A stretch of DNA of 64,000 bases from Schmidtea nova (Eukaryota): positions 494,078,001 to 494,142,000 of the forward strand of contig CM097882.1 in assembly GCA_044892505.1 (NCBI GenBank), written 5' to 3'. Both the position numbers and the translations under genes were made by a program. Positions 4,501 to 46,748 of the stretch are shown here, piece by piece. The notes below the pieces were generated by a model. It was not told where the DNA came from. It saw nothing but the letters and a program-made list of their open reading frames with translations, and did no database searches. The first letter of the stretch is position 1, and every line of letters begins with the position of its first letter.

Positions 4501-5516
4501 ATAATTTATTTTAAACAAATCCAAAAAGATTTTTCGTCAAAATCCGCCCAGTCAAACACCAGAATTTTAATCATAATATNNNNNNNNNNNNNNNNNNNNN
4601 NNNNNNNNNNNNNNNNNNNNNNNNNNNNNNNNNNNNNNNNNNNNNNNNNNNNNNNNNNNNNNNNNNNNNNNNNNNNNNNNNNNNNNNNNNNNNNNNNNNN
4701 NNNNNNNNNNNNNNNNNNNNNNNNNNNTGTGAAATGAGATTTAGTTAATGATTTAAAAGAGTAATTAATGAAAAGGTCGCTTTACCAAAATTACTTAAAT
4801 GTGAGCCAAATTATAACATCAAGTTAGGTGAAGAGACTCGAGAAGACTTTCTTAAAAATGGAGATCCAGTTTCAATTGCCGTAAAACTACAAAATTTGAT
4901 TTTAAATTATCATTCATTTCTTAAAATCATAGTGTTATTCTAGATTAGCATGCTATTATAAATAAAGTCTCTCAGAAGCTAATACATGAATAAAATACCA
5001 TAGAAAAAAAGACTTTAAGATGCATTGAAAAAATCAAATGACTTCTACCTTTAAGAAAGCAAAGACAGTATCAAATTGAAGAATTAGAATTGACCATGAG
5101 GTATTAAAAGAAAATCTAATAGAAACAACATTAAATTAAAGAAAGTTAAACTAAAAATGTTGGGCCAGGCAAATCAGTCATCATCTAAAAAGTAATATAA
5201 AATCAATGAAATAAATTTACAGAAAAACAACAACAAAAATAAATTACCATCATCAAATAGTCAGCAATACGCGGCTGAATCTGAAAACAACAAAAGAATA
5301 AATCAAAATAAAGTAACAATAAAAACTCGCCCATGCGAATCAGATAAATCTGAAAATATGACAGGACGTGGGCGAACATCATCGAAGATCTAAAATAAAA
5401 TAAATCATAACAAAAAGAAAATTAACGCATGGTTAAACAAACAACTTACTGAATTAAATCATGCAGAAAGACTGACGAACATAAATGAGTAACAATAAAT
5501 GCACACATACTCGATG

Positions 5517-5570
5517 CTGATTGACCAGCCAACATCACCAATTTAGTATAAATACTGAAGCGAAATCAGT
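5517..5570 (+). promoter_or_regulatory. Putative Pol II promoter of copy 1 (CCAAT-like box, TATA, Inr-like TCAGT)
   Basis: CTGATTG 5517, TATAAATA 5547-5554, TCAGT 5566-5570. Same order and spacing at 30261-30316, 38284-38337 (minus) and 43621-43670. Confidence 0.6.
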
Positions 5571-6469
5571 ATGAGGGTCACTTTTTACCAATCAATCAAT
5601 TTTTACCGAGTGTAATTGTCAGTGGAACCTGATACTGTAACTTTGTGAAATCTAGTTGTAACGAAATAAAAGGTATAGTTGATTTCATTGTTACTTTTTT
5701 TGAACCCTCATAATCATACTAAAATCGACAAGGATCGTCCCGAAGGCCTAACGGTCTGACGGGATTCTCGGCCTCTCGGCTCAACATATTTTCATATGAG
5801 GTGCTGATGCGGCGGGACCCTAGGTGTAATAACTATTCATCGATCGGGAGTGGGGTGCACATGGGATATCGAGAAACGTCGGGTCGACAAATTTCATCCG
5901 AGGTAGAGGTAATCTAGAATATATACTACCGGCCACAGAGAACTCAAGAGAATGGGGTGCGCATAGGATGTAGTGGATCAATACGTCGAACGTGTATCCA
6001 ACCATATGCATACAATCGATAACGAACATCATGATTTACCGAGAATTAGAGGCGAGGCAACACCAAAGGGTAAGGCAGTTGGTGCATGTATACTTTATAC
6101 AGAGGTTAACCTTTACGGGATCCGAAGTCCTAATTAACCCTAAAGAGCGATGATCATTGGTAGATACAGATGAGGCTGATGACAAAATGATGATGTATGC
6201 ATGGTGAAAATAGAGATAAAAATTGAGAAATAAGTAATACAATAAACGACAGTATATTGATCATAATGTGTGATTAGAATGACTGAAAATAAATTTTAAA
6301 TAAATCAACAACTAGTGATCAGCAGTAGCAATAACACCATCCTACACGGTCTATTTCGCCGATCGAAATGTGGTTAACCGGCTGGATACTAGACACCCAC
6401 TTGACTGAGAACAACTAGCTCGCCAATCTGCGTGGAATGATCCACTATAAATAGAAACCAGCATCACTA

Positions 6470-7141
6470 ATGAATATTCAACAAAATTATTTACAGATGA
6501 AACGCGAAAGCATTATCACCCCGATGCCAACTTCGTCTCTCCAGCAGCAACCAGGTCGCGATAAGACGAGTCAGAAACGCATCCGATCTATGCCGGAGCG
6601 ACATGCCGATAACCAAAGAAAAGTGGAATTGCAGGGGGTGAAAGACGCACCCATTCCGATTGTCCGGCAAGCTCATCGACACCTCCGCAGATGGAGACGA
6701 CGACACTCTAATCCAGCGGCCAGAGTCGCATCGTGCTCGGTTACGTTCCGACTACGATGGGAAGGAGATGCGGAGTGGATACCATCGTCGAGCCAGCCCA
6801 ACCTGAACCTTTCGCGATGGTTCATCCAAATGACAGATGATGCCGGACAACCTCGCTGGATACTATGCTCCGGAATCATGACGGGCCCCGCGTTTTACGG
6901 GCTCGGATATCTTCTCCTGGATAGGCCCCGGTGTAGCGACACTGGGGAAATCCAGCTCTATCCTCACGCTCCAGGGAGCGTAACATTGGAGCCCAATCCA
7001 GAGCCGAGCGAACTCCGATTATGGGAGGTGTTTGCACACAAAGATAAGCTTTGTTGGCAACCGTCCCCGGAACTATACCAAGCCGACGGAAAGAGACGGG
7101 ATGACCGAAACGCGGATCAAGAATTGCGACCTTTCTTCTAG
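6470..7141 (+). CDS. ORF-A of the TG...CA family, unknown Trp/Arg-rich protein (223 aa)
   Basis: Open frame with clear homologues at 36744-37302 (minus) and 31161-31685. Shared W.G.A.W and G.P...F..LG motifs; WFI.M.D in copies 1 and 3. Confidence 0.75.
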   Translation: MNIQQNYLQMKRESIITPMPTSSLQQQPGRDKTSQKRIRSMPERHADNQRKVELQGVKDAPIPIVRQAHRHLRRWRRRHSNPAARVASCSVTFRLRWEGDAEWIPSSSQPNLNLSRWFIQMTDDAGQPRWILCSGIMTGPAFYGLGYLLLDRPRCSDTGEIQLYPHAPGSVTLEPNPEPSELRLWEVFAHKDKLCWQPSPELYQADGKRRDDRNADQELRPFF

Positions 7142-7348
7142 GAGGAAGATGTTCGTATCCGAAAACACCAAATCCAATGTAATTGTGTCATAAATGGATA
7201 AATTTTCCTTAAAAAGTCTTGTTATGATTTCCGAGTAATTGCCGACGATTGTTTGAGTTGATAGGAAGTTGAATTATAATAACGACATAAATAGGAACCA
7301 ACCAACAATCAGGTCTTCACAACTCAGATTAAATACCCATTTTTGTAG

Positions 7349-7887
7349 ATGAATACGGAAAGCTCTCGTGATTACAAGAAAGAGGCACGTGAGCACAAGG
7401 CCCACTCTAAGGTTCTCGAGAGCCGATTGCGCCAGTTGAACGAAGAACACCAGCGCGTCAAGACCACTTGGTTCAGCCCAGAGAGGGTCAAAGCGATATT
7501 ACAAGCCCGATACCGAGCCGAACGGATAGCCGAAGAACAAGCGAGGGAAATGGCCGCAGTCAAGCTGGAACTGCATAACTACCTAAAGGTATCCACGCAG
7601 GAGTTCGTTACCCAGCAATTGCGCCCAATGATCCGGGCGAGTACATTCAATAGATGGGTGGATACGATCGCCATCACTACAAGTACCCAGACGGAGACAG
7701 AGTCGAACTCAACGATGACTACCCCAACCGTATCAAAAGGACCAAGCGTCGCAATCGCTTAGGGGCGAAGAAACGACGTGAGCGCAGAGCGTATGCCGAA
7801 CGACTAGGCATCGAAGTGGATTTGCTAAGCGGACTCACAGAAAGCCAGTTATTAGATGTGATTAGACCGTCTGTATTCTTAAACTGA
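7349..7887 (+). pseudogene. ORF-B of the TG...CA family (coiled coil plus Arg-rich C-terminus), one frameshift
   Basis: 7349-7762 and the overlapping frame ending 7887 together match the intact 185-aa ORF at 35783-36340 (WFSPERVKAIL; KRRNRLGAKKRRERRAYAERLGIEVDLLSGLTE). Confidence 0.78.
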
Positions 7888-8054
7888 AAATAAATGTATA
7901 ATAGTTGATCAACTTGATTTGTTTGTCTGTGGTATGTTGGAAAATAAATAGCAAAGTAAATTAAACCGATTCATTTTGTGCTACAGGTACCCCGAAATTG
8001 GGTTTACCCTAGCAGAGTTAGAGGAGCGCATTATAAAGGGACCGAGAGAAAGCC

Positions 8055-8240
8055 ACAGAAACCTTCTAGCGGTAGTGGTGGACCCGTGAATAAACAAGGG
8101 AATAGTAGCCGCGAGGTTGCTCACCTGCCTTGTCATTTCACAACGTTGACACAGCACCAACATGATGAGTAGTTAGGGATACATCATGGGTGTCAGCGGT
8201 GAGATGTTTTTTATGTTGGCGAGATCACCCTAACCTATAA
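8055..8240 (+). other. Conserved structured non-coding module near the 3' end of copy 1
   Basis: ACCTTCTAGCGG 8061-8072, GGGAATAGT 8098-8106, GCTCACCTG 8119-8127, CAGCACCAAC 8152-8161, stem GTTAGGG 8172-8178 / CCCTAAC 8228-8234. Conserved in the other copies. Confidence 0.6.
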
Positions 8241-10799
8241 AAATCCAAATGATCTCAGTTGTCCATCTAACTAACACACCAGCAAAAAGCAAAAATTCTT
8301 ATTAGTTAGATGCAGACATTTCATATAGAGATTTTATATTAATGAACCCAATGACTGGGACAGAAAGTAAGCCTTCAAGATATCCTTGATAAGTGATTTA
8401 TAAGATTCAATAATCTTAGCCTTGAAATTGTCATATGCCGATTTTATTTCAACAGTCTCTAAGATGTACATGGAAAATATCTGAAGAATATTTGAAGAAA
8501 CCTTCAAAGAGCTAAATCGAAACTCGAGCGTTGCAAACAAGCATTTTAAAAGACCTTGAATCTCTAAAAACTAGGGAAGCATGTGACAGTGATTTTATTT
8601 TTATTTTAAAAAATAATAATTTAAGCAAATTTAGAATGATCTTCAAAAATCTTCAGCAAAAGAAGCACGTTACAATTTATTTGACAAAACCTTTCTGAAA
8701 GCAAAATTGACCAAAAAAATTAAACCAAAACCATAAATATTCGTTATGAAAACTTAAAAATTGACAATAAGAAAAGTTTTATAAAGTGGTTTGATAAAGT
8801 ATGAAAAGTATTCAATGATACAACCGAGCGGGAATGAGTCGAAATAATAATTTTTGGTGAGTTATTAATTGACAAAATAGTTAAAAATAATTTTCTATTA
8901 GGGATTTTTGAATAATTTTCATTTTTGATATAAAGACTAAGTCAAAAATATCTTTTAGTGTCGTAAACAGTCTTTTTGATCTAGTATTTTTAAAAAAAAT
9001 AAAAATTTCTAAAATAGAAAAGAGATCAAAGATGAAAAAATAAAAGTTTTAAATGATAAAAAACATGCTACGATTTTTTTTCTAAATGTCAATAAGTGGA
9101 AAGAATTTGTTATTGGAGGTGTATTTCAATAAATTAGTCTTTTTGTAAGCGGTTGAAAATTGTAGTTGGTTAATTTCTTAACCAGGTGCCGTAATCGGAC
9201 CCCATTAAATCCGTCATTTTTAGATAACCTAAATTTATCAATACGGTAAGCGCGCCATAAATGACTATCAAGATGCATCCTTGAGCCTTTCGTAAGATAT
9301 AAAATATCCCCCGATTATCGATATACAAAATGGTACAGATTATTATGAGCACATATATTTTATACAGTTTATTAGGTACCAACTCCAATTTACTTTCAAT
9401 TTAATATATATAATGAGATAATGATGACTGCTATCTGAGACACATTCAGGCCAAATATCATCGAATTAACTTGCAGATTGACAAAATATAAATTAGAATG
9501 TATAAAAAAGCTTGTGCTAAATTATTATGAACACTTTAGTTTTTAGCCCTTTACACTTTATGGATATTATATAGGTTCCTTCTCTCTGCTTTCCAATTTC
9601 CATTGACTGTTGTGAGATGGAAGAAGATGACGGAGAGTGGTCTCTGTTGTCTCACGTAGATACAGTTTATATTTTCATTGTGGAACGCTGATTGATTAAT
9701 TATCTTTCTATTAAAAGTACGCATTTATCTCTCTATTATTTCTCTTGTTTCTTGTAGACCACATTCTGATGATAAAAGAACATACAAAAGGCGATTTGAA
9801 GATAAGGAATTGATAGAAAAAAGTATAAGCATTTTATAATTTGCTCAAAACAATAGTTTATTTTTATATTTGGTTACACCCACACCTTTAACTTTATTGA
9901 ATGCTATATATTTTTATTCTTAATGATGATGGAATAAGTCAAATTCAAACTCAGACAAACGTGTTCAGATGCTTGGATAATATTTACTTTAGGATAATAA
10001 GAATATTATATTTTGAATTGTATCAAATTTAATTTATTTATTGTGCTTGCATTTAATTGTTATTAAATTTAGCCTTATATCCTAAAAGAGTAAAAAATTT
10101 CAATAAATTGAAAAAATGAAAAATGTTATTCAATTTTTATTATCGGACGATTCCAACTTCATCAAGTAATGATAAAAGTAAATATATTTATTACAATAGT
10201 GTCAATTTTACAATTTTAGAATTATCTATTTTGTTTTTTAAAAATATAATATTACCACAGAAAACGAAAGTAATGAGACTTACAAACTAAAACATCCGAT
10301 GAGTATGAACTTTCCAATATATAAATATCAGAGAATAAGCATAATAATAATTAAAAATTTAGAAAAACTAAAATAGAGAAAGATATGCGATTAGTGCAGA
10401 TAAATTCGCTTTGGAAAAAAATGAAACGTAGACACAGTACTTGCAGTACGCCCAACCTCAGAATAGCCCAATCATAAATGGCCAATAAAGGGTTGTAGTG
10501 GGGATTCGCGAGTTTTGTAGGCGTCACTGTTCTTTCCGTGTGAACATTGGTACAATTAAAATCTTATTTTTATTTTTATTTTCGAAAATTCAAATAAATT
10601 TCAAATAGTAAAAATTTTTTGATTTCATGATTTTTGGAGTGCGCGCTAAGTTGTAATCACTGCGCGGAACTTTTAAAACTGCTGCGTGGCCACCCACGCG
10701 CGCAGCTTAGAGGGAACGTTGGTCATGACAGCATCACCAGTTGACATTAGCAAGAGAAAATATTAATTAAATAAATAAATCAGAAAAAAATTATTTAAA

Positions 10800-29861: not shown

Positions 29862-29863
<2 letters not shown>

Positions 29864-29892: not shown

Positions 29893-29895
<3 letters not shown>

Positions 29896-31160
29896 TGGGC
29901 CAGCTAAACAGAGAAAAGTTAAATAAACCTATAATAATTAAAACAAAAAGAGAAAATGTAAGATAAGAAAGGGGAATATTAGATTTAAAAGAAAAGGGTA
30001 ATATAAATAAAATATAGATGAATTACTGGTAAATTATAAATAAAAATAGATAAATTGAGGAGACTTCCAAAATTAACCGGCATAAGAGACACCTAAAAAC
30101 AAATAAAATGTAAATATTAATAATTAAAACAAAATAAAAGTACTTTTTATTAAATAATTGTTCTGAAAAGCCGGACCACCTAGAAAGAATCGAATCTAAA
30201 AAATAAAAATTAATTAAGTAAACAAAATAATAATTGGACCTACGGTATAGACAATCAAACCTGATTGGTCAAGCTAGACCAGACAGATCAGTATATATAC
30301 TGATCATAAATTCAGTCAAATAGAAGATAAGAATAACAAGTTTTAGACAACAGACTAGTATTGACACAAACTGAGACATTTAGATCAATTGCGAATTTTA
30401 CATTGAAACCTATACATTGTCACATTTCAACGGAACTTGGACCCAATCACCAGTTTTCGGATCAATAATCTTGAGCAATTTTTAGTTTGATTTATGTATA
30501 TGCTATTCATGATTTTGTCATAATAATTACATTTGTCATATGAATTATATTTCGTATTAATAATTTTGTTTTCTTAATCTTTATCATACAATTTTATATG
30601 CTAATTTTGTGGTGTTAATGAATTGAATTTTAGAACTTAAATTATGAAATTTAGTGCACCGACTGGGAGCTATAGGTTCCCAGGGTGTCAGTCCGCGTCG
30701 TGGGGCTTAGAGGCTCCACACACGGTAGAGAAATCAATAAAAATAAATTAAAATCTACAGGATTGCACATGGGACACAAAGAATCGAGGCAAACATTTCC
30801 GTTGCGGATAGCAGTGAGTAGGCGAGGGCACTGATTTGAATGAAATGTGGGGAACCAGAATAGACCCGAGAAGCGTTATACGTTAACAAATTTAAATCCG
30901 AGGCTGTTTTTATAGGTACATTAACCCTTCTGTATTATAACCCGACTACAAATAGTAAATTTTCAGCGATGAGAGCCGACAAATAAGCATAATTAAATTA
31001 ATGAAAATATATGTTATTTTCGACTTAATTTCCTCGTCATCAAAAGTGACCTAGTACCTAAGGGGTATAAGTGAAATTAAAATTAAACGAGCGAGGAGAG
31101 ATAATATTAAATTTAACTAATCTACTGTTATAAATGATAAATTTATGATCATCCAGAAAA

Positions 31161-31685
31161 ATGACAAATCGGAAGTTACAAAACAGAAAACGGAGAGTAG
31201 CCAGGACCGAGAATCAGTGGGGCTGGAAAAATGGACATCTAAAGCGGAACCGAGTCCGGGTCAGTCCGCTAAAGCCCGCTCCGTTCGAGATTATTCAGCA
31301 GGTTCACCAGAAAATGTGGGCCTGGAGAAGGGAATTAGAGACGACATGCCCATTCACGGTATGGGATCACCCACGTCATCACGTGTGGTACCAAGGATGT
31401 GCCAACTGGCCCATAATTCCGTGTGAAGAATTTGAGAAATGGCACGCAGAATGGTTTATCCTAATGTTAGACGAACGTGGTTTCCCGACCTTCGTCATCT
31501 ACTGGGGTTACATTCCGGCCTCAACGTTCAGAGAACTTGGAATCGTGTTCAATATCGCGATTCGACCACTCCGGGAAGCCGAAAAAGAAGGCCTGAAGAA
31601 AGCTGAAAATGTCACTACCGACATTAATACCAATCTACAAATCCGAACCATATTCTTATATCGGGGAAAGATGTCTGACGAATAA
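31161..31685 (+). CDS. ORF-A homologue (174 aa)
   Basis: APFEIIQQVHQKMWAWRR / WYQGCANW / WFILMLDERGFPTFVIYWG...FRELG aligns with copy 1 APIPIVRQAHRHLRRWRR / WEGDAEW / WFIQMTDDAGQPRWILCSG...FYGLG. Confidence 0.72.
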   Translation: MTNRKLQNRKRRVARTENQWGWKNGHLKRNRVRVSPLKPAPFEIIQQVHQKMWAWRRELETTCPFTVWDHPRHHVWYQGCANWPIIPCEEFEKWHAEWFILMLDERGFPTFVIYWGYIPASTFRELGIVFNIAIRPLREAEKEGLKKAENVTTDINTNLQIRTIFLYRGKMSDE

Positions 31686-31931
31686 TTTAATTTAATAAAT
31701 TTTTTTAGCAAATGTGTGTTCTTTAAATCATTAGATCAGTAACTAATTACAATAATTTAAAACTTCTGGAAGTAGTAATGAAATAAATTAATCAATTTAT
31801 AAAAACCTAATAATTAATTATATTAGAATTTATGGTGTTCATTTCGTACGTTATCTCTAGTATTTATTTAAATAAAATATAGTCGTCGATATAGTTACCG
31901 GTGAAATAAAACATTATAATATTCAGACCTA

Positions 31932-32519
31932 ATGCATTCTACCGAAAACTCCAAGAAAGTTATAAACCAAGTGCAGGAACGGAAGATGAGGGATCAACAG
32001 CGTCAAATCAAGCGACTCACGGTCGCGAACCAGGAACTAAAAACGCGATGGTTCTCTCCCGGACAGATGAAAAGCCAACTGGTAAAAATGGAGCGGCTAC
32101 AGGAAACGTTAACGGAGACGAAGACGGAGCTCGACGCAGTCCAGAGAGAATTACGTAACTATCTAAACTCAGTGACGAGGAGTTACATAGACACCGAACT
32201 GCGCGCATTAATCCGGCCAATTACAACTCAGCGATGGACCCAGAATAAATACCAGGACATTGCAATTGGAACGGAAGACGGACTTATCACGTCGCTAAAT
32301 TCTACTATGGAAGTTCCTCCCGCATCTCACAACAGCCAAACAGAATCAACAGTTCTCACACCCGTAGGCGGTCAACAACAACGAAGGAACCGATTAGGGT
32401 CACGACAACGACGTCGTCGACGAGAGTTCGCAAGACGGATGAACGCACAGATAGACCACCTAGATACGCTAACGGAGTTGGAGTTAATAAATGAAATTAG
32501 CTTGGATTTTATGAAATAG
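31932..32519 (+). CDS. ORF-B homologue (195 aa, intact)
   Basis: Coiled coil, WFSP, ELRNYL, LIRPIT..RW, RRNRLGSRQRRRRREFARRM..ID.L..LTE. Confidence 0.78.
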   Translation: MHSTENSKKVINQVQERKMRDQQRQIKRLTVANQELKTRWFSPGQMKSQLVKMERLQETLTETKTELDAVQRELRNYLNSVTRSYIDTELRALIRPITTQRWTQNKYQDIAIGTEDGLITSLNSTMEVPPASHNSQTESTVLTPVGGQQQRRNRLGSRQRRRRREFARRMNAQIDHLDTLTELELINEISLDFMK

Positions 32520-33260
32520 CATGTAGATGTTACGATGTAAAATAAAATATTTTCTAATTACAGTGTTTACTGGTTTAATATTATCTTTCATCGTGTAAAT
32601 TTTCCTAAATAAATTAACCCAAAATAAGTAAATTGTTGAAGTAACCAGTTTCCTCCTGAATCTCACAAATGACCGTTCCTGCGAAAAGATAGATTAATTA
32701 CCAGATAAAACAAACTACTGAAAGTAAAATACGAAAGTTATGAGAAAGTGTTTTTTTTTATAATAAGGGCATAGAGAACAAAGATTACTAGTGGGATGAA
32801 TATAAGTAGAATGTAAATGCGTAAGACCTTCTATCGGCAGCAAGGACCCGAAGGAAGATAAATGTGGAGTAGTTCTGGTAGCGGAGGGAATAGTCAAGTA
32901 GGGAATAGTCAAGGGCATACGCGTGTCGACGATAAGTTATGTGGGGCTGTTGGCGGGAAATCCCTAGCAACTACCAATTTACATACGTATATTTTATAAA
33001 CCCATCCACAGTCCCATCATATATATAACTTGGTTAATAAAAACTACTAAAAATTAAAAAAAATATTTAAATGTTTAATAAAAAAAATTACTTAAAATAA
33101 AAACTTATTACAATTAACATAAAAATAACTTAAAATAAAAACTAAAATGAAAAACGTTTATTGAACTAAAATAACTAAACTAAACTGACATTAAACTATA
33201 AAACTGAAACTAAAACTGATTACATTAAAAAAAACTGATTACATTAAACATAAATATTGT

Positions 33261-33650: not shown

Positions 33651-33933
33651 TAATGTTGAGCTGTTAACGAACGAAAAAGAATTTAAGCAATTGATTTTAC
33701 CTTTTTCAATAAAAGATAATAATGGATTCANNNNNNNNNNNNNNNNNNNNNNNNNNNNNNNNNNNNNNNNNNNNNNNNNNNNNNNNNNNNNNNNNNNNNN
33801 NNNNNNNNNNNNNNNNNNNNNNNNNNNNNNNNNNNNNNNNNNNNNNNNNNNNNNNNNNNNNNNNNNNNNNNNNNNNNNNNNNNNNNNNNNNNTAATAAAA
33901 TTATTTTTTATTTATTTAGACCCACGTCCAGGA

Positions 33934-34890
33934 ATGAACAAAAAAAGAAAATCGTTTTCACTTAAATTTAAAATGCAAATTATCAAAGAGTATAAACCCA
34001 ATATTTCTGGATGTGGTTTTATGGCATTGGCTAAAAAATATAATTAATCGACAGCGACAATCCGAGATTGGGTTAGAGATCAAAAGCAAATTTTTAAATT
34101 ATTGAGTAATAAGGAATATTCAACAAGAGTCTCAAGACGATTGCCGGGTGGCGGCAGAAAAAACGAATTTGATGAACTCGAAGATGAGCTCATCAAATGG
34201 ATTCAGGAAAGAAGCGAGAAAGGTCTTCGTATAAAAGACAAATATATTCGATCTATGGCATTAAATATAAAACAGAAGTATACTTCCGAAAAATATTCGA
34301 ACTTAAAAGTTTCATCTGGCTGGCTTGAAAATTTTAAGCGTCGTCACAAGATGGTTTCGAGATGACAAACTACAACAAGAGTCGTAGCACTGGACAAAAA
34401 TTGTATTTGAGTTTATTCACAAAATACAAAAAATTATATCGGAAAAATAAATTAAACCAGAAAACATTTTAAATATGGACCAAGTTCCGAGATATTTTGA
34501 GGCGGAACCAAAAACCACTATAACTTTGAAAGGAATTCGACATTTTGTGATGCGCAAATCCAGCAGTTCCCACAAAAGATTCATTGCAACATTTACAATC
34601 GCGGCTAATGGAAAAATATTGAAACCGCATTTGCTATTTTCAAAATTGAAAAAAATCCAAAAGTTCAGAATGGGTGTTTGGTTGATGTAAATGACAACGG
34701 AATGTGGAGTTTTGATATATTAAAGAAATACATGGCCAATGTAATTATGAGCAGGCCACAGACGAGTTTCTTTCGTGAACCAGTTTTATTGGTTATTGAT
34801 TCTTATGCGTCGCACTTGAAGTTAACAGCTACAAAACATTATGAGAAATACAACATTTTAATGGAGATCATCCAACTGAAAATGACATGA
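33934..34890 (+). mobile_element. Decayed pogo-like transposase (HTH, CENP-B HTH, DDE_1)
   Basis: KRKSFSLKFKMQII, LPGGGRK..LEDELIKWI, SSGWLENFKRRH, NMDQVP, VLLVIDSYASH; several stops and frameshifts. Confidence 0.85.
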
Positions 34891-35782
34891 TTATTACAAT
34901 CATTAATACAAACATGATTTGTGGTAAATATTTCGAGAACTTAATTTTCAATATAAATCAAAATTTAGTACGATAAAAAATTACTTACCTTACATTCTTT
35001 AATAGTAGATTTAATAATTCTTAAAACAATCACTGCACAGTACAAAAATAAATTATCACTGGTCGCTATATAAAAACTGTTAATTTTAAAAGAAATGCAC
35101 AAGTCACTATTTAAAAGAAACCAAATGAAATAAACTAAACATTTATTAAAATATATTTAAGATTTAAAGCAAATCTAGCGCTATAGATTCTCCAAATTGG
35201 TGACATAACATTCTTGTGATCTACTTTATCCTTGAATTGTAATATAAATAAACCAATTTGAATGGTCTTTATAGTAAATTGATTTAAACACATCATGATA
35301 TCGGCTGTTACGATTGTTAAAGAATACAATTTCATTACTAGTCAAATTTTTATTGACTTTCATCAGAACTTTATTAACAACAACATGCTGGTGCGTTGGT
35401 TAGATGGACAACTGAGATCATTTGGATTTTATACGTTAGGGTGATCTCGCCAACATAAAAACATATCCCCGCTGACACCCATGATGTATCCCTAACTACT
35501 CATCATGTTGGTACTGTGTCAACGTTGTGAAATGACAAGGCAGGTGAGCAACCTCGCGGTTACTATTCCTTTGTTTATCCACGGGTCCACCACTACCGAT
35601 AGAAGGTTTTTGTGGATTTCTTTCGGTCCCTTTATCATGCGCTCCTCTAATTATTCTAGGGTAGACTCAATTTCGCGCTACCTGTAGCACAAAATGAATC
35701 AGTTCGATTTACTTTACCATTATTTTTTCAATCCTTCCATCGACAAGCAAAACAAGTCAACTACTTAAATATACATTTATTT

Positions 35783-36340
35783 TTAATTCAATAACACCGA
35801 AGGATTAATAACGTCCAACAACTGTTTCTCGGTTAGCCCGCTTAATAGATCCACCTCAATACCAAGCCTTTCAGCATACGCCCTACGCTCACGTCGCTTC
35901 TTCGCCCCCAAGCGATTTCGGCGTTTCGTCCGCTTTGACCCTTCTCCCGGTTTCACCATCTCTGGGGTGGTTGTCGAAGTACCGGATTCAATTTCTGTCT
36001 GGGTGCCTGTCGTTGTAACCACGGTATCTATCCATCGGTTGAATGTACTAACTCGCATTAGTGGGCGCAGTTGTTGGGTGATGAATTCCTGGGTGGATGC
36101 CTGTAAATAGTTATGCAGCTTCAATTTTACTGCCGCCGTTTCCCTCGTCTGCTCTTCGGCTATCCGTTCGGCGCGATATCGAGCTTGTAATATAGATTTG
36201 ACCCGTTCCGGGTTAAACCAGGTCGTCTTTACTAAATGGAACTCATCGTTTAACTGACGCAATCGGCTTTCCAACACTTTAATTCGCGATTTATGTTCTC
36301 GGGCTTCGATTTTGTAGTTCCGGGTGCTAGGTTTATCCAT
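35783..36340 (-). CDS. ORF-B (185 aa, intact)
   Basis: Near-identical motifs to the joined copy 1 ORF-B. Confidence 0.8.
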   Translation of the reverse strand: MDKPSTRNYKIEAREHKSRIKVLESRLRQLNDEFHLVKTTWFNPERVKSILQARYRAERIAEEQTRETAAVKLKLHNYLQASTQEFITQQLRPLMRVSTFNRWIDTVVTTTGTQTEIESGTSTTTPEMVKPGEGSKRTKRRNRLGAKKRRERRAYAERLGIEVDLLSGLTEKQLLDVINPSVLLN

Positions 36341-36743
36341 CTAAAGACAAAAGGATTTTATTTATGTCTACATTGTAGTTCGCTACGGGCCCTTCACTTC
36401 CCCTTGTCACTCAGAATACTACCTCGTCACGGTTCTACTTATCCTTTGCTAACAGATGTCCCTTGGCAAAGTACTCCCATCATTCTGATCCTATTCACAT
36501 TCTCACAGACAAACACATTCCCCTTGAACCCATTCACGCAACCCAGTTAGTTACACGCAATCACTGGTTTGCAAACATTACCGTAGTGTCACATTATCGT
36601 ATAGCTCCAATCAACCATATTGAACTCATGCAGACAGAATAAACTCACTCAACCATGCAAACAAATCGATTTCATCAACACGAAGGCTTAATATTATTTA
36701 TTAATCGGCTCACAAATCACTACAAAGTGTCAGTATACTCCGT

Positions 36744-37302
36744 TCAGCAGCATCCATGAAAATCCAGGAGGTCCTGGTCGAGTTGCCGTTCGTCCCGCCC
36801 GGTTCCATCCGGTAGGTATATCTCGGGACATGGATTCCAACATAACCGATTTTTATGGGCGAAGACCTCCCATAGCCTCGCATGATTCTCTTGCGATTGG
36901 GTGTTCATATCCGCATTGCCGGGAACATGTAGGTACGGTCGTCTCTTTCCAGATACCCTACATCTCGGCTGGTCCATAAGAAGGTACCCGAGTCGGTAAA
37001 AATCGGATCCCCGTACGGAGGCATCACTGATTACCCATATTGGTTGATTTTCGGTATCCTCAAGTTGCATTTCCTCGGTCGTGTCCATCCGGGGGTATCG
37101 CCCAGTCGGCGTCGCCTTCCCAACGTATGCGAAGTTTGAAGGATTCAGTTACTGTCCTGGTTGACGGGTCGACATGCCCGCGGATCCACGCTCTTAGGCG
37201 TCGCTCGGCCGATTTTCGTATGTCATTCGGGATGGACGCGGAATCCATTATCTGCCAGCCTCGACGGGTATGGCCCTGTCGTCGTATCCTTTGGGGTTTC
37301 AT
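36744..37302 (-). pseudogene. ORF-A of copy 2, one frameshift
   Basis: Frames 37060-37302 (LRIRWEGDADW) and 36744-37088 (FYRLGYLLMDQPRC, RLWEVFAHKNRLCWNP) match copy 1 ORF-A. Confidence 0.78.
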
Positions 37303-39419
37303 TATCTAAAGTTATTGATAAAAAATCGGCTAGCATCAGAACAGTCGTTTGTCATAACGGGGTGCATACAATCTTTCATTCGACTGAAATTGAAGTCAGC
37401 ATACTCACATCACGCATGTAACCTTTCTAGAAATTCTAAAATCAAATTACCTGGTGGTTTTTTCTTCTTCTTTTCGTAAATCGAGGTGGTGTTAATCTAT
37501 TGCTCACCTGATCGTTGACATATATATGCTTACCCACCTACAGATATGATTTTTGGTGGTTATATGATGGTAGCGAACGTTATTACGTCGATTTTGACAT
37601 CAGCCATCGATTGTTATTGTAGGCCGGTTATAGTATCGCCTCTCATTCTATTTCATTCATTTTTACATCGGCAATTTGGATTTACTTTCATACTGCAACA
37701 TACGCTCTTTCATGCAAATCCGCTCACAACATCATTCAAACAACTTGTATGTAGATCTACGGGGTTGGATTGGGGTATTAGAGGTGTAAATTCGTCCCTG
37801 ATAACCTGATTCTGGGTGGGGTATGTAGTATCGTAGCTCCTTTGTCCTCATTATTAATTCTCATATCCGCTTATGGATAATAGTTAGCTACATGGCCTGG
37901 GTTGTTGTCTATCATCTACGTTCTCGTTTGTCTTTACTTCCTATCTTTGTTCTGTGTAAATTGGTCATAAGAATGAACTATGTGCATCCTTCCCCTCCCA
38001 TTTAATTAGTACACTTATGGTCTCGCCGCATCAGCACCTCGTATAAGAATATGTTGTGCCGAGAATCCCATCAGGCCGTTAGGCCTTCGGGACGATCCTT
38101 ATGGATTTAAATATTATTATGAGGGTTTAAAATAAGTAACAATGAAATCAAATATACCTTTTATTTTCGGTACCGTTACAGTTCTTTGATCTCAATAGAT
38201 TTCAATTCACACTAGTAGGTAAGATAATTCGCTAGTGAAGTAACACTACCAAATTTCGCTGTAATAAAAAAATGACCCTCTCTACTGATTTTACTTCAGT
38301 ATTTATACTACATTGGTGTTGTTGGTCGGCCAATCAGCATCGAGTAGGTGTGTATTCATCGCTACTCATTTAGGTTTGTCAGTTTTTCTGTATAATTTAA
38401 TTCAGTGAGTTGTTTGTTTACTCATGCGGTAATTTTCTTTTGTTATGATTTATTTGATTTTAGATCTTCGGTGATGTCCGCCCACATGCTGTCATATTTT
38501 CAGATTTATCTGATTCGCATGGGTGAGTTTTTAATGTTACTTCATTTTGAATTATTCTTTTGTTGTTTTCAGATTCAGCCGCATATTGCTGACTAGTTGA
38601 TGATGGTAATTTATTTTTGTTGTTCTTTTTGTGTCAATTTATTTCGTTGATTTTATATTGCTTTTCAGATGATGACTGATTTGCCTGGCCCAACAAACAT
38701 ATTGTTTATATATTTTTCCCATCAAATTTGAATATTGTGACTTAACTAAATTGACTGGGTAAAGGAATTTGAATTTAATTTCCTTTTCCAAGAAAAATAT
38801 ATCATGTTCATGAAACTTTTGATATTTGGTTTAATTTCTTTGAATTTTCATTTGACTCAAATATTTTCTTAATTGAAATCAGTTTCTGGAAACGGAAAAT
38901 TGATTGCATTTTATGATGATAATTAATTTTGTCCTTGTATTTATACTCGTTATTTTTCATGTGCATCCAATGTAATTCGTGCATCTGAATTACACATGAT
39001 GTATGTAAGTTTATGACCTGTGTGCATCCATGAGTAATACCATGCTTCACATCTCTATTACAAATGATATTTAATTATAGTTTCAATGAGTTTATTAATT
39101 ATAAAATCTAATATCTAAAATTACTTTTTAATATTCTATCAAAAAAATTACTAGATGTACTATATCAATAAACACAATTTCTAAAAATTACTTTTTCACT
39201 AATAAAAACAATAAGATAAAAATTTTTGTCAAATACATACAAGTCTTAAACAGTAAAAACAAGTTTTAAACATGTACTAAACAATATAAAAACTATTAGT
39301 AAAATTTTAAATAAAGATATACAAGTCTATAATACAAAATAACAATAAACAAAGACAAATTAATTTTACTAAATAAAGATTCAAAAACAATTTCCAAACA
39401 TTTAAAATAAAAACAACAA

Positions 39420-39775: not shown

Positions 39776-39870
39776 TTTGTTATAAATCTAATGAAAATGA
39801 ATTCATTATATACTAAATATTTCAACACACCATCATCCAATCAAAATCAAGTATTTTATTAGGTAATTAT

Positions 39871-40310: not shown

Positions 40311-40389
40311 TTAACTGATTATTTTTCAAATACTTTTGCAAAACGTATGACAATGAATTAAAACAAATATAAACAAGTAATATCTTAAA

Positions 40390-41032
40390 ATGGAATTAAG
40401 AAATGATACAGTTTATCAAATTGTTGGTCCTAGTGAAAGTGGAAAAACATTATTTGTAAATTATTACAATTAAAATTGTTCAAATCAAAATTTAACAAAA
40501 TATATTGGCATAGATGAGCTGATGATGAAAATGGATCGACTCAAGATCAATTTTGTAAGATAAAAATGACTATAATAAAGGGTTTCGATAAAAACTGGTC
40601 ATCTAGATTACGACAAGGTAATGTAATTATAATTGATGACTTGTATCAAGAAGAGAATAAAGAAAAGAAATTTAATAATTTATTTACTAAAATCGCTAGA
40701 CAGTGTCACAGTTAAATTTATTACACAGAATTTATTTCGCCAAAGTGGCAGTCATCGAACTCGTAATTTGAATGTTCAATATCTAGTTATTTTTAAAAAT
40801 CCTAGAGATGCCAGTTATTGATTCTCTTGCAAGACAGGCTTACCATAATAATCGGAATTTCTTGATCAATGTATTTCAAGATGCAACTATAGTCTTACAT
40901 TGTTATATTTTTCTTAATTTTACTCAACAATGCAATGATGAATTACGTGTTAGAACTGATATTTCAACAAAGAAGGAGCCATGGTTTATAAAAAAAGTTA
41001 AACTCGTGTTCAAAATTAATCATGAAAATTAA
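40390..41032 (+). pseudogene. A32/FtsK-like packaging ATPase of Polinton/Maverick type, frameshifted
   Basis: Walker A VGPSESGKT, Walker B VIIIDDL, ITQNLF, NLNVQYLVIFKNPRD, LARQ, CYIFLNFTQQCNDELRVRTDI. Confidence 0.85.
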
Positions 41033-42214
41033 AGCACGTGTCAAACATCCAAAATTATCGAAACTTATAAAATTTATTAAAAAGATTCGTGAAACAATAA
41101 TTCCATTATTATATACAACCTAGTCTATTTGGTTATAATTTATTATGTCTAATTATTTATATTATAACCTTTTATTTGTGCTTTGGAGGAATTGTAGTTA
41201 TTGATGATCTGAGAAAGAAAATCGAGATAAATATTGTAATATGAAACAATATAGATCGAGATCTAATAGTTTTCTTTCAATTAAAAATAATACGAAAATA
41301 CATTTGTTAAAATTTAATTTATAAATAAAGCTTATAGTAAATTTATTGATTTTGTTTTAATGCCTTTGTAAAAACACGATCGGGCGGTAGTTTTATTAAT
41401 CAAAATTTGATAATAAATTAATGACTAACGAAATAACAAAAATTAAGCCATATTCACATCACAAGATTTTTTATTTTATTTTTTAACGCAAAGTAGATTA
41501 AATGACAACGCAAACGGAATTTTAGGAAGAAAATAAAACATCATACAAAATGGAAAATCCCAAAACAAGACTCACGCTAACCGAGGTATTGGTGTATTTA
41601 ATTAATATTTATACAGTATATTATTTTTAATTTTTTTTGGAGTCATCCCTATCCTTTTAGATATTATCATGATTATTATCTAAATTCACCCGTAAGTTGA
41701 GGTTTATCTATAGAATACCAGACGGAAACAGAAATCACACGTCTTTTATCGAAGTCAAGTAAATTGGAAGCAGTGGTCAACACAAAGTCCCAAATTGGGC
41801 TATTATCTACAGTGTACAATAGCAACTAGTGAGTTTACTGTAAGATCGTAAAGTTACTCTGTATTAAAGTAATTACGATGGGATGTGTGCTACTAGAAAA
41901 ATCCAAATGACTCATTTTGGAAGAATAAAGCCTGAATTATCGATACGATTCCTATTGGATTGATCACATCTTCCAATTATTTGAAATCATCCCTATCATG
42001 CCATGAATTGTTGCTATTATATATTTTATAATTTGCTAACTTGACTTAATTTAAATTCTAGATATTACATCAAAATTAATTTGATTCAAATAAACGAATT
42101 ATCAAATGCGAAATTTGGAAATTAAAAAAAATATTTTAAATAATGCATTCATCTTAAGAATAACCAATAAGAAAATGAAAAATAAGAAAAATCAATTTTT
42201 AATATACATACAAT

Positions 42215-42220
<6 letters not shown>

Positions 42221-42303
<83 letters not shown>
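42221..42303. repeat. (TA)n microsatellite
   Basis: About 80 bp TA run. Confidence 0.95.
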
Positions 42304-43285
42304 TTAAGAAATCTAACTTTATTTGTTAATAGTTAAACTAGATGAAACCAGTGAAAAATCACGTGATGTAATGACACATTAAAAATATTTTTCATAGATT
42401 AATAATTTAATTTTAATTATCTTATTATATTTTAAAAATACTCCGCTACCGACCAACAATAACAATTTTATATTTTTAATTATCTTTAATAATAATAAAT
42501 GTATTTGCAACATTAAATTACTGTAATTAATTACTTAAAAATATTAAGTATATTGGACTAGCCTCCTTAAAACAAATAGAACAAATAGAAAGCCGGTTTT
42601 CTCATGAAATCGTTCCGAATTATGTACTTTTCCCAAAAGTTATAAATATCAATGGAATTTTGATGAATTTTATGGGGTTTGTCTCTAGAAAACAATGGCA
42701 AATGAATAATAAGCAATCAGTTATAATATGGCTATGTGATATATCTAACAAGAAAATTCGCTAATAAAGCTAATCTGGCGTTGTTGCCAAGTAAAGAATC
42801 TTTCTTTGAAAACAAATAAATCAGCGGTTTGTGATGTGTATAGATCCTAAAAAACGGCCCTAAAGTAAATATTTAAAATGTTTAACCGACTCACAAATAG
42901 CGAGAAGCTATAACAGCTTGTGGAATAGGAAATTTAGATATTGTATCTAGTCTGTCAGATAACGAACGACCGCCTTGACCTGAGATAATGTGACCCAAAA
43001 AATAAATTTCCTCTTTAAAAAATAAACACTTTTAAGAATTATTCTTTAGATTGTTATTAGAAAGTGCACAAAGAACCGCATTGAAGTGTTTCATGTGTGT
43101 TTCTGCGACATTAGAACCAATAATAATATCGCCAATATACGAAATGGCGAAAGGTAAATCCATCAAAATATAATCAATATGCCTTTGAAAAGTTTGGTGG
43201 AATTTTTAGGATCACTACATTCACTGAGTCACGAATCTAATGATACGATAGAAAGCAACAAGGAAACGAAATGAACAGTTACTTA

Positions 43286-43720
43286 TGTTGGGTTCTCATA
43301 TACACAAAAATTTGTAACATCTAGTAAAATAGCACAAACAATTGATCAAGGAAATAAAAATAAAATATCAAGTTAAAAGGATAAAGAAAGAAATACAAAA
43401 CGGAGAAAACATGATAATAGGAAAAGGAAATGATTAAAATAAAAATAAAAACAAATAAATCCAAAAGGAACATAAAAATATGGAAAAAGAGAATAAATTA
43501 TAATTAAATTAAATAAATAAAAGAATTTAATACAAGCAATAAGAAAAACAACCAATTGAAATAAAATAGAAAAATTGTAAATCGACTTATTTAGCCAATA
43601 AAAAAGCTGGATCAATTTTCATTGGCTGCTTGAGCGCCAAAATTTGTATATAAGAGGCGCTCAAGTCAGTTGAGAGAGCATTAATTTTTAACCTATTCTT
43701 GCGAGAGCATTTGTTAGCAC
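43286..43720 (+). mobile_element. 5' end of a TG...CA family member or related LTR
   Basis: TGTTGGG start, A-rich tract, ATTGG 43621, TATATAAG 43647, TCAGT 43666; same spacing as copies 1-3. Confidence 0.55.
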
Positions 43721-43729
43721 ATTCTTTCT

Positions 43730-45710
43730 GGTCTCATGATAAAACAGAACATTACAGAACAGAACGTGCTAAAACATAACAAGAAAAAACAGAGCACGTA
43801 CAAAACAGAACTACGACAAATCAGAACAGTCACAAAACAGAACAGGTATAAAACAAAACTATGACGAATCAGAACAGGATAAAAATAAAACATCTGTTAT
43901 TTGTTATCTCTATACGTGCCATGTTGCCTGGCTTGCTAATTTGTTCTTAATATGCTTTTTATTAATCCGATTATCAGAAAAGTTAGTCCTTCGCTATAAT
44001 GCAATTTCCAATAAGTATATAATGGTTTTCAACATATCAAATTTATTCAGTGTCTTTTTGCATCTTCGCGTGGCACTTGAATTTTTCGTTGTGAAAACGT
44101 GTTAACAGTTATATTATCAGTCTTTTTACAAGGTAAGCATTTATAATTTTATATCGTATTATTATTATCTGTTCATAAAATCTACATAACATAACAAAGG
44201 TAAAATATAATATTAATTATAAATTTGTTTTTTAAAAGATCCATCGTCTTGGAATATTCAGTGACTCGGCAAGGAAATACAGTCTTACTCTACCAGGGAT
44301 ATGAGTAGTACTCATTGAGTACATAAAGTATAGAGAAAATGATTCCAAGGTAATTACCTGGAGATGCAGAGTTTATTTTTCTACTAAATGCAAAGCATTC
44401 TTGAGGACACAAGGAAATATCATTGGAGAGGTACCATGACACTGCCATAATTCCAAATCCCCAGAAAGCACGAGCAAATACCCTGTAAGCTAAGATGAAA
44501 CAAGTTATGAAGGCAGTTGGCGCAACTCCCAGAAATATAATGGGAAATGTTTTAACCGATGTAAGCAATAATGTTTTGGAACATTTACCGAAAAATCCTC
44601 CCTCACAAGGACACTTTTCAAACATAAGGGTACTTCTATCCGCAATCCCCCTACAATTGATTTTATCATCCCAGAGAAGTATGCTGACCTGATTATACAT
44701 GATACGGGAACTAATGACCCAGAGAAAAAATTGGCAATAGGAAATGGAGATCTGGTTAAAGAATTACAAAAGGATGTCATTTATGGGGATGTGATATTCA
44801 ATAAACACCCAGCATGTTTTATCAACTGTATATTTGGCAATTCCTATACTCCATGCATTTATTTTCCATTGCATAAAAAATATGGAGACATATTCAAGAA
44901 TGTTTGCCGTTTTGCAACAATTGCAGCCGAATTAAAAACCAGCAAAGATTCTTGTTGATTTCGAAAAAGCATGCATGTCTACTGCTCAAGTTGCTTTTCC
45001 AGAAGCAATTATAACAGGATGCTATTTTCACCTGTGCCAGAGTGACCTTAGGTACATAAATAGTGTTGGCTTGAAAACAGCATATGAGTCAAATATTGAA
45101 ATTAAATTGACAATAAAGTCATTACCTGCTTTAGCATTTGTGCCAATAGACCAAACAAGAATGGTTTTTGAAATATTAGCTGCTTCATTTCCAGACGAGG
45201 ATAGCTATAATGAAGTACTAACGTATTTTTTTCAACATATGTGGAAGGAATTGCAGGGAGATCTCCTGTATTCCCAATCCAGACTTGGAATCACCATGAG
45301 GCCGCTATAGATGGATGTACCAAGACAGCAAATTGTTGTGAAGGATTTCATAATGCGCTAAATTCAATATTCGATTGCAGCCACCCAAGCATTTGGAGTT
45401 TATTAGGCGGCTTAAGGCGCTATATTTCGGGTCAACGGCTAATTTTAGCGAATGCACAAACAGGTCGCCCAGAGGTGACGAATAAAAAATACGATATATA
45501 AGCCAATAAAGTTGCTGCAATTGTACAGAACTATGCTGAAGAGGATGAGAAACTAAAGTTTTTACGCCGGATGGCCAATTTTCAATAATTGTTTTCTTGT
45601 ATTGTATATATTGTGTAAATATTTTTGTAGAATAATAATGCTATAGTATATTAATAAATATTTTTTTGTTCTGATTCGTCGTAGTTTTGTTCTATACCTG
45701 TTGTTTCAGC
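43730..45710 (+). mobile_element. Mutator-like (MULE) element with disrupted transposase
   Basis: Inverted repeats 43838-43876 / 45667-45702 built of cagaac subrepeats. Frames 44270-45590 include GCYFHLCQS, IKSLPALAFVP, WNHH...KTANCCEGFHNALNS....HPSIWSLL. Confidence 0.85.
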
Positions 45711-45729
45711 CAAAGTTTATTACTTTTAT

Positions 45730-46748
45730 TATTGTTATTAAGAGAGTATATCGTCGGGACAGGAAATGGGTGTGGCGACATGGATAGAAGTTATGTTAAT
45801 AAAATTAGATATTCAGAAATACATAAATACTCAAGTAAAGATGGATAGTGAGATACTAGGAAGGTTAAAGCAAAAGATCTTGGACCTGGAAAGCAGTTAT
45901 TTTCCGCCGGCCGAGATGAAAAGAGCAAGAAATAAGTTAGCACGCACAACCGTGGTCATCGAAGACCAAAGGATCGAAATTGCAGCCTTGAAAATCGAAT
46001 TGAACAACTGTAGGAAGTTGACATCCCAGAGGTTTATCGCTGATAACCTAAAGTACGTAATCAGACCAATAACGTTGACAACATGGTTCTCAGTGACAGA
46101 ACAGGAGAAAGAGAGTGCTAATGAGATAACCGATGGAATACCCCGAACACCCAAGAAGAGGCGCAAAACGCATGCGCAGCGGCGTCGTCAAGCGAAAAAG
46201 CGACAGGAGGAAGACCTCAAGAAAACATCGACCAATTCAAGCTCCACGGATATTCTAAAATAACGGACTAACTGACTGAATTGATGTCACAAAAATGTCA
46301 TAATGATTAAATATATGTATTCTAAAATTGCAGTGATTGTTTTGTATAGTAAATGTAGAAATTTCGTAGTATTTAAAATTAATAGTTAAAACCTTTTCCG
46401 ACGAATAAACGAGTATGAAAGATTCGTAACGAGTTGAGAGAAACACCCGAAATTAGTGACCAGCGAATGGGTGAGTGGGGAAAAACCAAGATGACCTTCT
46501 ATCGGTCCTGTAGAACTCGAACGAGCGACAAATCGAGAGTAGTTATGCTAACGAAGCTCACCTGTCGATTTGCGATCGGCCGTCATGCACAGTACCAACG
46601 TAAATAACTAGGGTATTTACGGGTGCGTGGGCGGTAAGGATTTTATGTGCGTGTCCAACCCTAGCAAGAGCATAACCAGGATATAGCGAAACGCAGTGAA
46701 ATTGGAAGGGTTACCATTTGAGTTTATTTCTAACGAGACACGCCAACA
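45730..46748 (+). mobile_element. 3' part of a TG...CA family member (copy 4)
   Basis: ORF-B homologue, ACCTTCTATCGG 46494-46505, GCTCACCTG 46556-46564, CAGTACCAAC 46590-46599, stem CTAGGGT/ACCCTAG, end CGCCAACA. Confidence 0.78.
45766..46263 (+). CDS. Diverged ORF-B homologue (165 aa; probable start 45841)
   Basis: YFPP, LKIELNNC, VIRPIT..W, KKRRKTHAQRRRQAKKR align with ORF-B WFSP, KLELHNY, LIRPIT..RW and the Arg-rich tail. Confidence 0.65.
   Translation: MGVATWIEVMLIKLDIQKYINTQVKMDSEILGRLKQKILDLESSYFPPAEMKRARNKLARTTVVIEDQRIEIAALKIELNNCRKLTSQRFIADNLKYVIRPITLTTWFSVTEQEKESANEITDGIPRTPKKRRKTHAQRRRQAKKRQEEDLKKTSTNSSSTDILK

Follow-up and report, generated by a model that had tools for sequence, protein, structure and literature searches.

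What kind of mobile element has TG...CA ends, a 4-bp target-site duplication (TSD), and two open reading frames (ORFs), and no mobilisation enzyme of its own? This question is raised by a 64,000-nt stretch of the genome of Schmidtea nova (assembly GCA_044892505.1, contig CM097882.1, positions 494,078,001 to 494,142,000 of the forward strand), referred to below as the window. A reading of this stretch made from the sequence alone, without database searches, had described an unrecognised family of 3.1-3.3 kb units, in which two genes, ORF-A and ORF-B, follow one another. We find that this family of repeats is real, with five statistically supported copies (c1, c2, c3, c4, and d5), and that ORF-A and ORF-B are genuine genes under purifying selection. 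As to what the units are, the explanation that we rank first, and to which we give about an even chance, is that they are solo long terminal repeats (LTRs) of an uncharacterised Gypsy-type retroelement family, whose LTR is itself a two-gene transcription unit.

A diverse repeat family with integrase-type ends

The window has a GC content of 24-32% in most 2-kb bins (~28% in the region around the copies), and the copies are conspicuous in it at 44-46% GC. Their coordinates, and those of all the other features, are listed in Table 1. The three full copies lie where the sequence-only reading had placed them. For c1 and c2, this was established by comparing the window with itself, which aligns the two copies as DNA at both ends (82% identity over 712 nt and 80% over 891 nt). 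For c3, it was established by protein matches. This copy is related to the others by protein only and not as aligned DNA, with 34% identity in ORF-B (E 4e-14) and 26% identity over 101 residues in ORF-A (E 4e-9), which bears out the claim that one full copy is conserved in protein and barely in DNA. That c1 and c3 are equal in length, at 3127 bp, is correct but is a coincidence, because the two cannot be aligned as DNA. The segment at 45730-46748, previously described as a 3' part, is indeed a portion of a family member, but it belongs to a larger copy, c4, which starts at 43286 and has been split by a nested transposon.

The motif TGTTGGG occurs 10 times in the window. Five of these occurrences are the starts of c1-c4 and d5, three are at chance level, and two (at 50236 and 63284) mark the start of the candidates c7 and c8, the former broken up by a small Gypsy element at 51768-55707. 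A further candidate, c6, consists of a degenerate tail. All three candidates have only the terminal motif and layout in common with the confirmed copies, to which their similarity is not significant. A TGTTGGG start is recognisable in seven copies, confirmed and candidate together, of which six are on the + strand, i.e. opposite to both host exons identified in the window. This bias does not reach significance (~p 0.1), but a one-strand small-RNA cluster would show such a one-sided orientation. The window has six runs of N. Two of them, at 24182-24330 (between copy edges at 22540 and 29893) and at 33731-33892 (between copy edges at 33019 and 35386), are within the stretch occupied by the family and separate neighbouring copies. 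No copy of the family, and no ORF or TSD, crosses these gaps, and only the spacing and order of the copies are affected.

The copies start with TGTTGGG(CC) and end with CCAGCA in c1 and c2 (...CACACCAGCA), with CCAACA in c4 and d5, and with CCCATCA in c3. In c4 and d5, 6 bp at the two ends are inverted without mismatch (TGTTGG...CCAACA). The ends read TGTTGG...CCAGCA in c1 and c2, and c3 finishes in ...ATCA; overall, only 2-6 terminal bases are inverted. When the 300-nt ends were compared in inverted or direct orientation, they were no more similar than shuffled controls, and neither terminal inverted repeats (TIRs) nor terminal direct repeats were found. The earlier description, in which ~6 bp are inverted at the termini and internal direct repeats are lacking, is accurate. 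Hidden mini-LTRs within the units were rejected, because direct similarity from end to end is at the level of shuffled controls, and no TGG-type primer site is present next to either end of any copy. The TSDs that had been claimed, AAAA and AACA, are perfect in c1 and c2, the chance of two random 4-mers of the window being equal amounting to 0.0075 per pair. The TGTTG start of the copies fits the TGTNR terminal pattern that has been reported for most Gypsy LTRs and for Ginger (PMC2836005). The copies are a mobile, diverse family with integrase-type ends and short TSDs.

ORF-A and ORF-B are under purifying selection

Intact ORFs of 165-223 codons, each of which has a chance probability of ~1e-4, are present for ORF-A in c1 and c3, and for ORF-B in c2, c3, and c4. 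The claim that both ORFs have stayed open holds for the family, but not for each copy, since ORF-B of c1 and ORF-A of c2 are each broken by one frameshift. Homology of the C-terminal third of ORF-A in c3 is not recognisable. The genes have 47-53% GC, and ~0.5 GC at third codon positions (GC3), in a host region of ~28% GC.

A dN/dS-type check, which the sequence-only reading had proposed for both ORFs, was performed by comparing codon positions, by determining the proportions of nonsynonymous and synonymous differences (pN/pS, Nei-Gojobori), and by counting identical 4-fold degenerate sites. All these tests indicate purifying selection. Between c1 and c2, identity at codon positions 1+2 and at position 3 is 0.84 and 0.49 for the N-terminal piece of ORF-B (Fisher p 6e-13), 0.93 and 0.39 for its C-terminal piece (p 1e-12), and 0.75 and 0.45 for the C-terminal piece of ORF-A (p 7e-7). 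The pN/pS values are 0.154/0.762 and 0.044/0.896 for the ORF-B pieces, and 0.335/0.873 and 0.418/0.813 for the ORF-A pieces; ORF-A is a fast-evolving gene. Identical 4-fold degenerate sites number 17/37, 7/21, 4/17, and 3/13 (23-46%), i.e. these sites are near saturation.

Layout of the units and their conserved tail

The units are laid out as A-rich bases 1-~350, a promoter, a leader of ~0.9 kb, ORF-A, a spacer of 207-403 nt, ORF-B, an AAATAAATGT block, a tail of ~390 nt, and a CA end. The putative promoter of c1-c4 combines a TATA box and a TCAGT initiator with ATTGG/CCAAT boxes and lies ~360-410 nt into the unit. We also considered whether c1 and c2 have a TATA+TCAGT promoter at their 3' end, but rejected this, because c3, c4, and d5 do not conserve it. 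Between c1 and c2, the first ~300 nt of the leader are ~90% conserved and the remainder is unalignable. The leader contains a conserved donor-like AAG/GTATA site (window position 5672 in c1, and the aligned site in c2), and pyrimidine-rich AG sites are found 0-6 nt 5' of the start codons of ORF-A (c2 and c3) and ORF-B (c1 and c2). This suggests that ORF-A and ORF-B may be translated from spliced mRNAs. An AATAAA signal follows ORF-B, and the AAATAAATGT block is immediately 3' of its stop. As judged by motifs, the order of promoter, genes, AATAAA, and tail matches U3-R-U5 in four lineages, and the units, which can be as short as 655 bp or as long as 3.3 kb, retain the ends and the tail.

A profile of the tail detects exactly five tails in the window, those of c1-c4 and d5, with E 1e-38 to 1e-66; it misses the candidate c6. 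The 12-mer ACCTTCTATCGG, located 194-255 nt from the 3' end, is identical in four of the five tails, c1 differing by one mismatch, and it is kept across lineages in which ORF-B is only 34% identical. In the c1-c2 and c1-d5 comparisons, the tail diverges at approximately the rate of the C-terminal protein sequence of ORF-B. The tail is evidently under deep sequence constraint. It had been described earlier as both conserved and structured, and only the first of these properties is supported. The tails fold no better than shuffled sequence (minimum free energy z-scores of -1.8, +0.7, and -0.9), the alifold consensus is weak (-6.6 kcal/mol, three covarying pairs), Rfam gives no match at gathering or E<=1 thresholds, and we found no long-range complement of the 12-mer that is conserved.

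Conserved ends and a diverged centre in c1 and c2

Identity between c1 and c2 changes markedly along the element. It is 87-95% at positions 1-300 and 2800-3127, and 70-91% in the promoter and early leader, whereas positions 700-1700 are ~50-58% identical, i.e. unalignable. ORF-B DNA is ~77% identical, with differences that are nearly all synonymous. The 5' A-rich region is 93% identical in the two copies, yet it is not conserved between deeper lineages, and this identity therefore points to recent shared ancestry. Decay after insertion is bounded to a few per cent by the identity of the ends, which fits with one frameshift per copy. Therefore, the elements from which c1 and c2 derive would have had near-identical ends and centres that were more than 1 substitution per neutral site apart. 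This mosaic, which sets positions 1-700 and 2800-3127 against 700-2800, points either to recombination or to a constraint of unusual strength that acts on ~1 kb of non-coding DNA, and a swap of the centre by recombination between lineages would be the simplest explanation. The possibility that c1 and c2 are the inverted terminal repeats of one 33-kb element was rejected, because both are flanked by perfect TSDs of their own and the divergence of their centres is ancient.

What the two proteins may be

In agreement with the sequence-only reading, a Pfam scan detects no reverse transcriptase, integrase, or transposase in the copies, and neither ORF-A nor ORF-B belongs to a Pfam family. The best Pfam match is to bZIP_1 in ORF-B, with 15.8 bits vs a cut-off of 27.6 (E 0.016), and covers residues 136-170 only. 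We rejected a bZIP transcription factor at the C terminus of ORF-B, because the match is below the gathering score and the segment is a basic helix without regular leucine heptads. Relatives were sought by word-index protein searches with c2 ORF-B and c1 ORF-A, by exact-protein look-ups, by PDB sequence profile searches with both proteins, by comparing an ORF-B profile with 1.84 billion representative proteins and with the IMG/VR and JGI metagenomes, and by searching the JGI metagenomes for a 20-mer of the 5' end of the unit. None of these searches found a homologue of the proteins, and no copy outside the window was found in the protein, IMG/VR, or JGI metagenome searches.

Structure prediction gave an unfolded-looking model for ORF-A, with a predicted local distance difference test score (pLDDT) of 37, and an all-helical model for ORF-B (pLDDT 72). 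The latter begins with three long helices of coiled-coil type (5-40, 43-93, and 96-118). A Thr/Ser-rich linker, which is disordered, connects them to an Arg-rich helix (142-157), and short Leu-rich helices form the end. A Foldseek search with this model returned no significant match. Rhabdovirus phosphoproteins and delta-antigen-like proteins, with E 0.2-8, were rejected as relatives of ORF-B, since the resemblance is of a generic helical kind. Likewise, neither protein was accepted as a retroelement Gag, because there is no Pfam Gag match and hhalign gives 0.1% probability for the ORF-B profile vs the gag part of the Gypsy element in the window. The best-conserved part of ORF-B is its C-terminal basic segment, where c1 and c2 are 94% identical to each other and 69-71% identical to d5, and an Arg-rich start is found in ORF-A of all three lineages. 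Both proteins may have nucleic-acid-binding or regulatory roles and, judging from its predicted model, ORF-B would most plausibly be an oligomeric protein that binds nucleic acids or has a regulatory function.

Solo LTRs and competing explanations

If the units are solo LTRs, a retroviral-type integrase would have inserted each original element, thereby generating the TGTNR...CA ends, the 5-6 bp inversion, and the 4-bp TSD, and recombination between the two LTRs would then have left one LTR behind. This LTR would be a full RNA polymerase II (Pol II) transcription unit, with CCAAT+TATA+TCAGT, leader, ORF-A, ORF-B, AATAAA, and a U5-like tail of ~390 nt. ORF-A and ORF-B, which purifying selection preserved during the divergence of the lineages, would therefore serve the element as accessory genes. 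Like solo LTRs of Ty3/Gypsy (Metaviridae), the units have TGTNR...CA ends, a 4-bp TSD, and, as predicted from motifs, a promoter followed by a polyadenylation signal and a terminal segment; they are solitary and they vary in length. The length variants share ends and tail (655-bp d5, and c4), as LTR subfamilies do. Unlike such solo LTRs, the units are 3.1-3.3 kb long with two selected genes, their R would be ~2.3 kb, and no internal region, primer-binding site (PBS), or polypurine tract (PPT) is seen in the window.

Several known systems with comparable features were considered. Ginger1 and Ginger2 (TDD) have TGTNR ends and a 4-bp TSD in common with the units, but encode an integrase-like transposase, which the units do not. 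In addition, Ginger elements have 40-270 bp TIRs, with a CCGG/CCGT TSD in Ginger1 and a 4-bp TSD within RTATAY in Ginger2, which prefers AT-rich targets (PMC2836005). With an inverted run of 2-6 bp and TSDs AAAA/TGTT, the units do not fit non-autonomous derivatives of either, and a Ginger-type origin fails on both TIRs and TSD type. LARD, TRIM, and TR-GAG elements also lack pol, and TR-GAG keeps a small structural gene, but these elements have an LTR pair, a PBS, and a PPT. They were ruled out, because the two ends of a unit share direct similarity only at the level of shuffled controls, and neither a TGG-type PBS nor a Gag match was found. The U3-R-U5-like order, the TGTNR...CA ends, and the 4-bp TSD, together with the failure of Ginger, LARD, TRIM, and TR-GAG, are therefore our reasons for ranking solo LTRs first.

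Several points weigh against solo LTRs. Within the window, no paired copy, PBS, PPT, or cognate gag-pol adjoins any of the 5-8 units, which represent at least four lineages, and there are no gag-pol remnants apart from one small Gypsy. If R is bounded by the TATA box at ~390 and the AATAAA after ORF-B, which are transcript ends predicted by motif, it would be ~2.3 kb long. This would be awkward for a genomic RNA and, to our knowledge, far exceeds any known R region. When the literature was searched for long LTRs, LTR-borne ORFs, and Woot, nothing relevant was found besides mouse mammary tumour virus (MMTV), whose sag was the only LTR-borne gene. By description, the MMTV LTR resembles the units in containing a gene, but it has one ORF (sag), in U3, with no promoter of its own inside the LTR, and it belongs to a vertebrate retrovirus. 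Among giant Gypsy elements, Ogre has LTRs of 1.9-6.5 kb and the planarian Burro has accessory ORFs (PMC6431247). These elements have, by description, LTRs on the same length scale and accessory ORFs in common with the units, but there the ORFs are internal or part of the polyprotein and not in the LTR (PMC6431247). The giant Gypsy suggested by the sequence-only reading is unsupported, since the window has no giant internal region and its sole Gypsy is 3.9 kb long, with different ends and a 5-bp TSD. Because of its ends and TSD, and because there is no gag similarity, this small Gypsy was rejected as a partner element.

Next in rank, and in our view clearly less likely, is that the units are self-contained non-autonomous elements, without LTRs or TIRs, inserted whole by a retroviral-type DDE integrase or transposase that is encoded elsewhere. 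ORF-A and ORF-B would then aid competition for the enzyme or for packaging. Consistent with this, the 5-8 units in 64 kb are all solitary, represent at least four deep lineages, and do not lie beside internal retroelement sequence; c1 and c2 have perfect TSDs of their own; the short d5 and the one-gene c4 retain both termini, like deletion derivatives of DNA elements; and the ORFs are selected together with the ends. However, solitary copies are weak evidence on this point, since a ready collapse to solo LTRs is to be expected of long LTRs. Moreover, we know of no mechanism for regenerating such ends. A retro-route requires terminal redundancy, of which the copies have none, and Ginger-type cut-and-paste requires TIRs of 40-270 bp (PMC2836005), compared with 2-6 inverted bp here. 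We give a similarly modest probability to complete mobile elements of a new kind, devoid of LTRs and TIRs, that would use a retroviral-type integrase in trans or an unknown route and would carry only two orphan proteins, which co-evolved with the cis ends until synonymous saturation.

Much less probable still is that the units represent a new type of autonomous element and obtain their insertion activity from ORF-A and/or ORF-B. Although these are the sole genes of the unit, are under purifying selection, and have no homologue found in searches, neither displays a recognisable catalytic domain or motif. The ORF-A model has a pLDDT of 37, and ORF-B is helical and basic, without a significant fold match. 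In addition, the ends are kept although c4 has no ORF-A and d5 has neither gene, and the combination of TG...CA ends and a 4-bp TSD indicates a DDE integrase with at least ~300 amino acids (aa), for which the unit has no gene. Finally, a non-mobile dispersed host gene family, or segmental duplications with similar boundaries, would explain the selected proteins and the ordinary Pol II promoter and polyadenylation signal, but is barely tenable, being largely refuted by the sharp identical boundaries (TGTTGGG/CCARCA), unrelated flanks, and TSDs, as well as disfavoured by the nesting of the copies among transposons, the nested insertions in the copies themselves, the GC content of the genes (47-53% vs ~28% for the host), and the existence of frameshifted copies.

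Genomic neighbourhood

The copies are found in a transposon-packed stretch of ~57 kb, which is bracketed by two host exons on the - strand, one of a DEAD_2 helicase (3679-4311) and the other of a proteasome alpha-6-like protein (~61750-62320), with best PDB matches at E 1e-27. The small Gypsy has a primer-site-like sequence after its 5' LTR (TGGCGACG) and a purine tract before its 3' LTR, and its Pfam domains are zf-CCHC, RVT_1, RNase H, Integrase_H2C2, and rve. There are at least two breaks in the coding region of this element, an in-frame stop and a frameshift, and gag apparently starts out of frame as well. The element nested in c4 has ORF remnants without a Pfam match. One relative of the hAT-like ORF is followed by a Dimer_Tnp_hAT gene. 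Several copies of a short repeat family abut N gaps, which suggests that these gaps are in repeat arrays. A near-perfect palindrome of ~94 bp (94% self-complementary) is present at 42216-42312. The ORFs at 33691-34047, 61069-61434, and 61441-61845 were rejected as genes, because they run through runs of N and are gap artefacts.

Table 1. Repeat units, their parts, and other features of the window
Feature	Position	Strand	Description
c1, full unit, 3127 bp	5158..8284	+	TGTTGGG...CCAGCA; flanks AAAA/AAAA, perfect TSD (4/4)
c1 promoter block	5520..5572	+	ATTGA/CCAAT boxes, TATAAATA, TCAGT initiator ~390-410 nt in (putative); same layout in c2, c3, c4
c1 ORF-A, 223 aa	6470..7141	+	intact; Arg-rich N terminus, fast-evolving C-terminal part
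c1 ORF-B	7349..7887	+	broken by one frameshift
c1 tail	7888..8284	+	AAATAAATGT block right after stop; 12-mer ACCTTCTAGCGG at 8061-8072 (one mismatch to ACCTTCTATCGG); terminal ...CACACCAGCA
c2, full unit, 3310 bp	35386..38695	-	flanks TGTT/TGTT in element orientation (AACA on + strand), perfect TSD (4/4)
c2 ORF-A	36744..37302	-	broken by one frameshift
c2 ORF-B, 185 aa	35783..36340	-	intact; long helices, disordered linker, basic helix (predicted)
c3, deeply diverged lineage	29893..33019 (start possibly 29889)	+	protein-level match to c1/c2; within TA/TG microsatellite, TSD undecidable (possible TATA site uncertain)
c3 ORF-A, 174 aa	31161..31685	+	open; only central ~100 aa align with c1
c3 ORF-B, 195 aa	31932..32519	+	intact; 34% identity match
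c4, split by nested TIR transposon	43286..46748	+	5' part and 3' part; no ORF-A; flanks do not match
c4 5' part	from 43286	+	TGTTGGG, A-rich tract, CCAAT/TATA/TCAGTTG promoter (putative)
c4 3' part	45730-46748	+	ORF-B-like gene and tail
c4 ORF-B-like gene, 165 aa	45766..46263	+	open; 29% identity to c3 ORF-B over 68 aa, E 4e-9
d5, short form, 655 bp	21886..22540	+	both termini, last ~49 codons of ORF-B (no start), tail; flanks AAAT/GAAT (3/4 match)
c6, candidate degenerate tail	~26228-26500	-	ACCTTCTATCAG and related blocks
c7, candidate only	50236..~55996	+	TGTTGGGC start, A-rich tract, ATTGG boxes, end ...ACACACCAAA
c8, candidate 5' part only	63284..64000	+	TGTTGGGCC start, TATA ~590 nt in; continues past window edge
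Small Gypsy, 3.9 kb	51768-55707	+	127-bp LTRs TGTTAG...TAACA, 5-bp TSD AAGGC; inside candidate c7
Nested element in c4, ~1.95 kb	~43740-45705	n/a	36-nt inverted arms (94% complementary), 16-nt periodic subterminal repeats
hAT-like zf-BED ORF, 344 aa	15862-16896	+	best relatives 48-49% identical (JGI metagenome, Logan run)
pogo/Tc5-type transposase remnant	19479-20952	-	DDE_1, HTH_Tnp_Tc5
IS1595/Merlin-like transposase ORF	48265-49140	+	72-bp direct repeats just upstream, 47703-47774 and 48133-48205
Short repeat family, ~100-140 bp	4355-4490, 57602-57885, 58240-58494, 61384-61596	both	80-98% identity

Significance of the repeat family

The repeat itself may already have been catalogued, in which case the selected ORFs inside it remain the new point, and standard annotation would mask ORF-A and ORF-B, which are real genes, as repeat sequence. 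With their conserved ends around a diverged centre, c1 and c2 lend themselves well to the study of how mobile elements recombine in modules. If the units are not LTRs, they would represent a new way of mobilising DNA with only TG...CA ends and, should they be mobilised in trans, they would be a protein-coding parasite of the retroelement machinery. If they are LTRs, an invertebrate retroelement can hold a whole promoter-to-polyA two-gene unit in its LTR, and each solo LTR would stay a potential expression unit for proteins of the element. Two selected accessory proteins without known relatives would then join MMTV sag, the only LTR-borne gene in our literature search.

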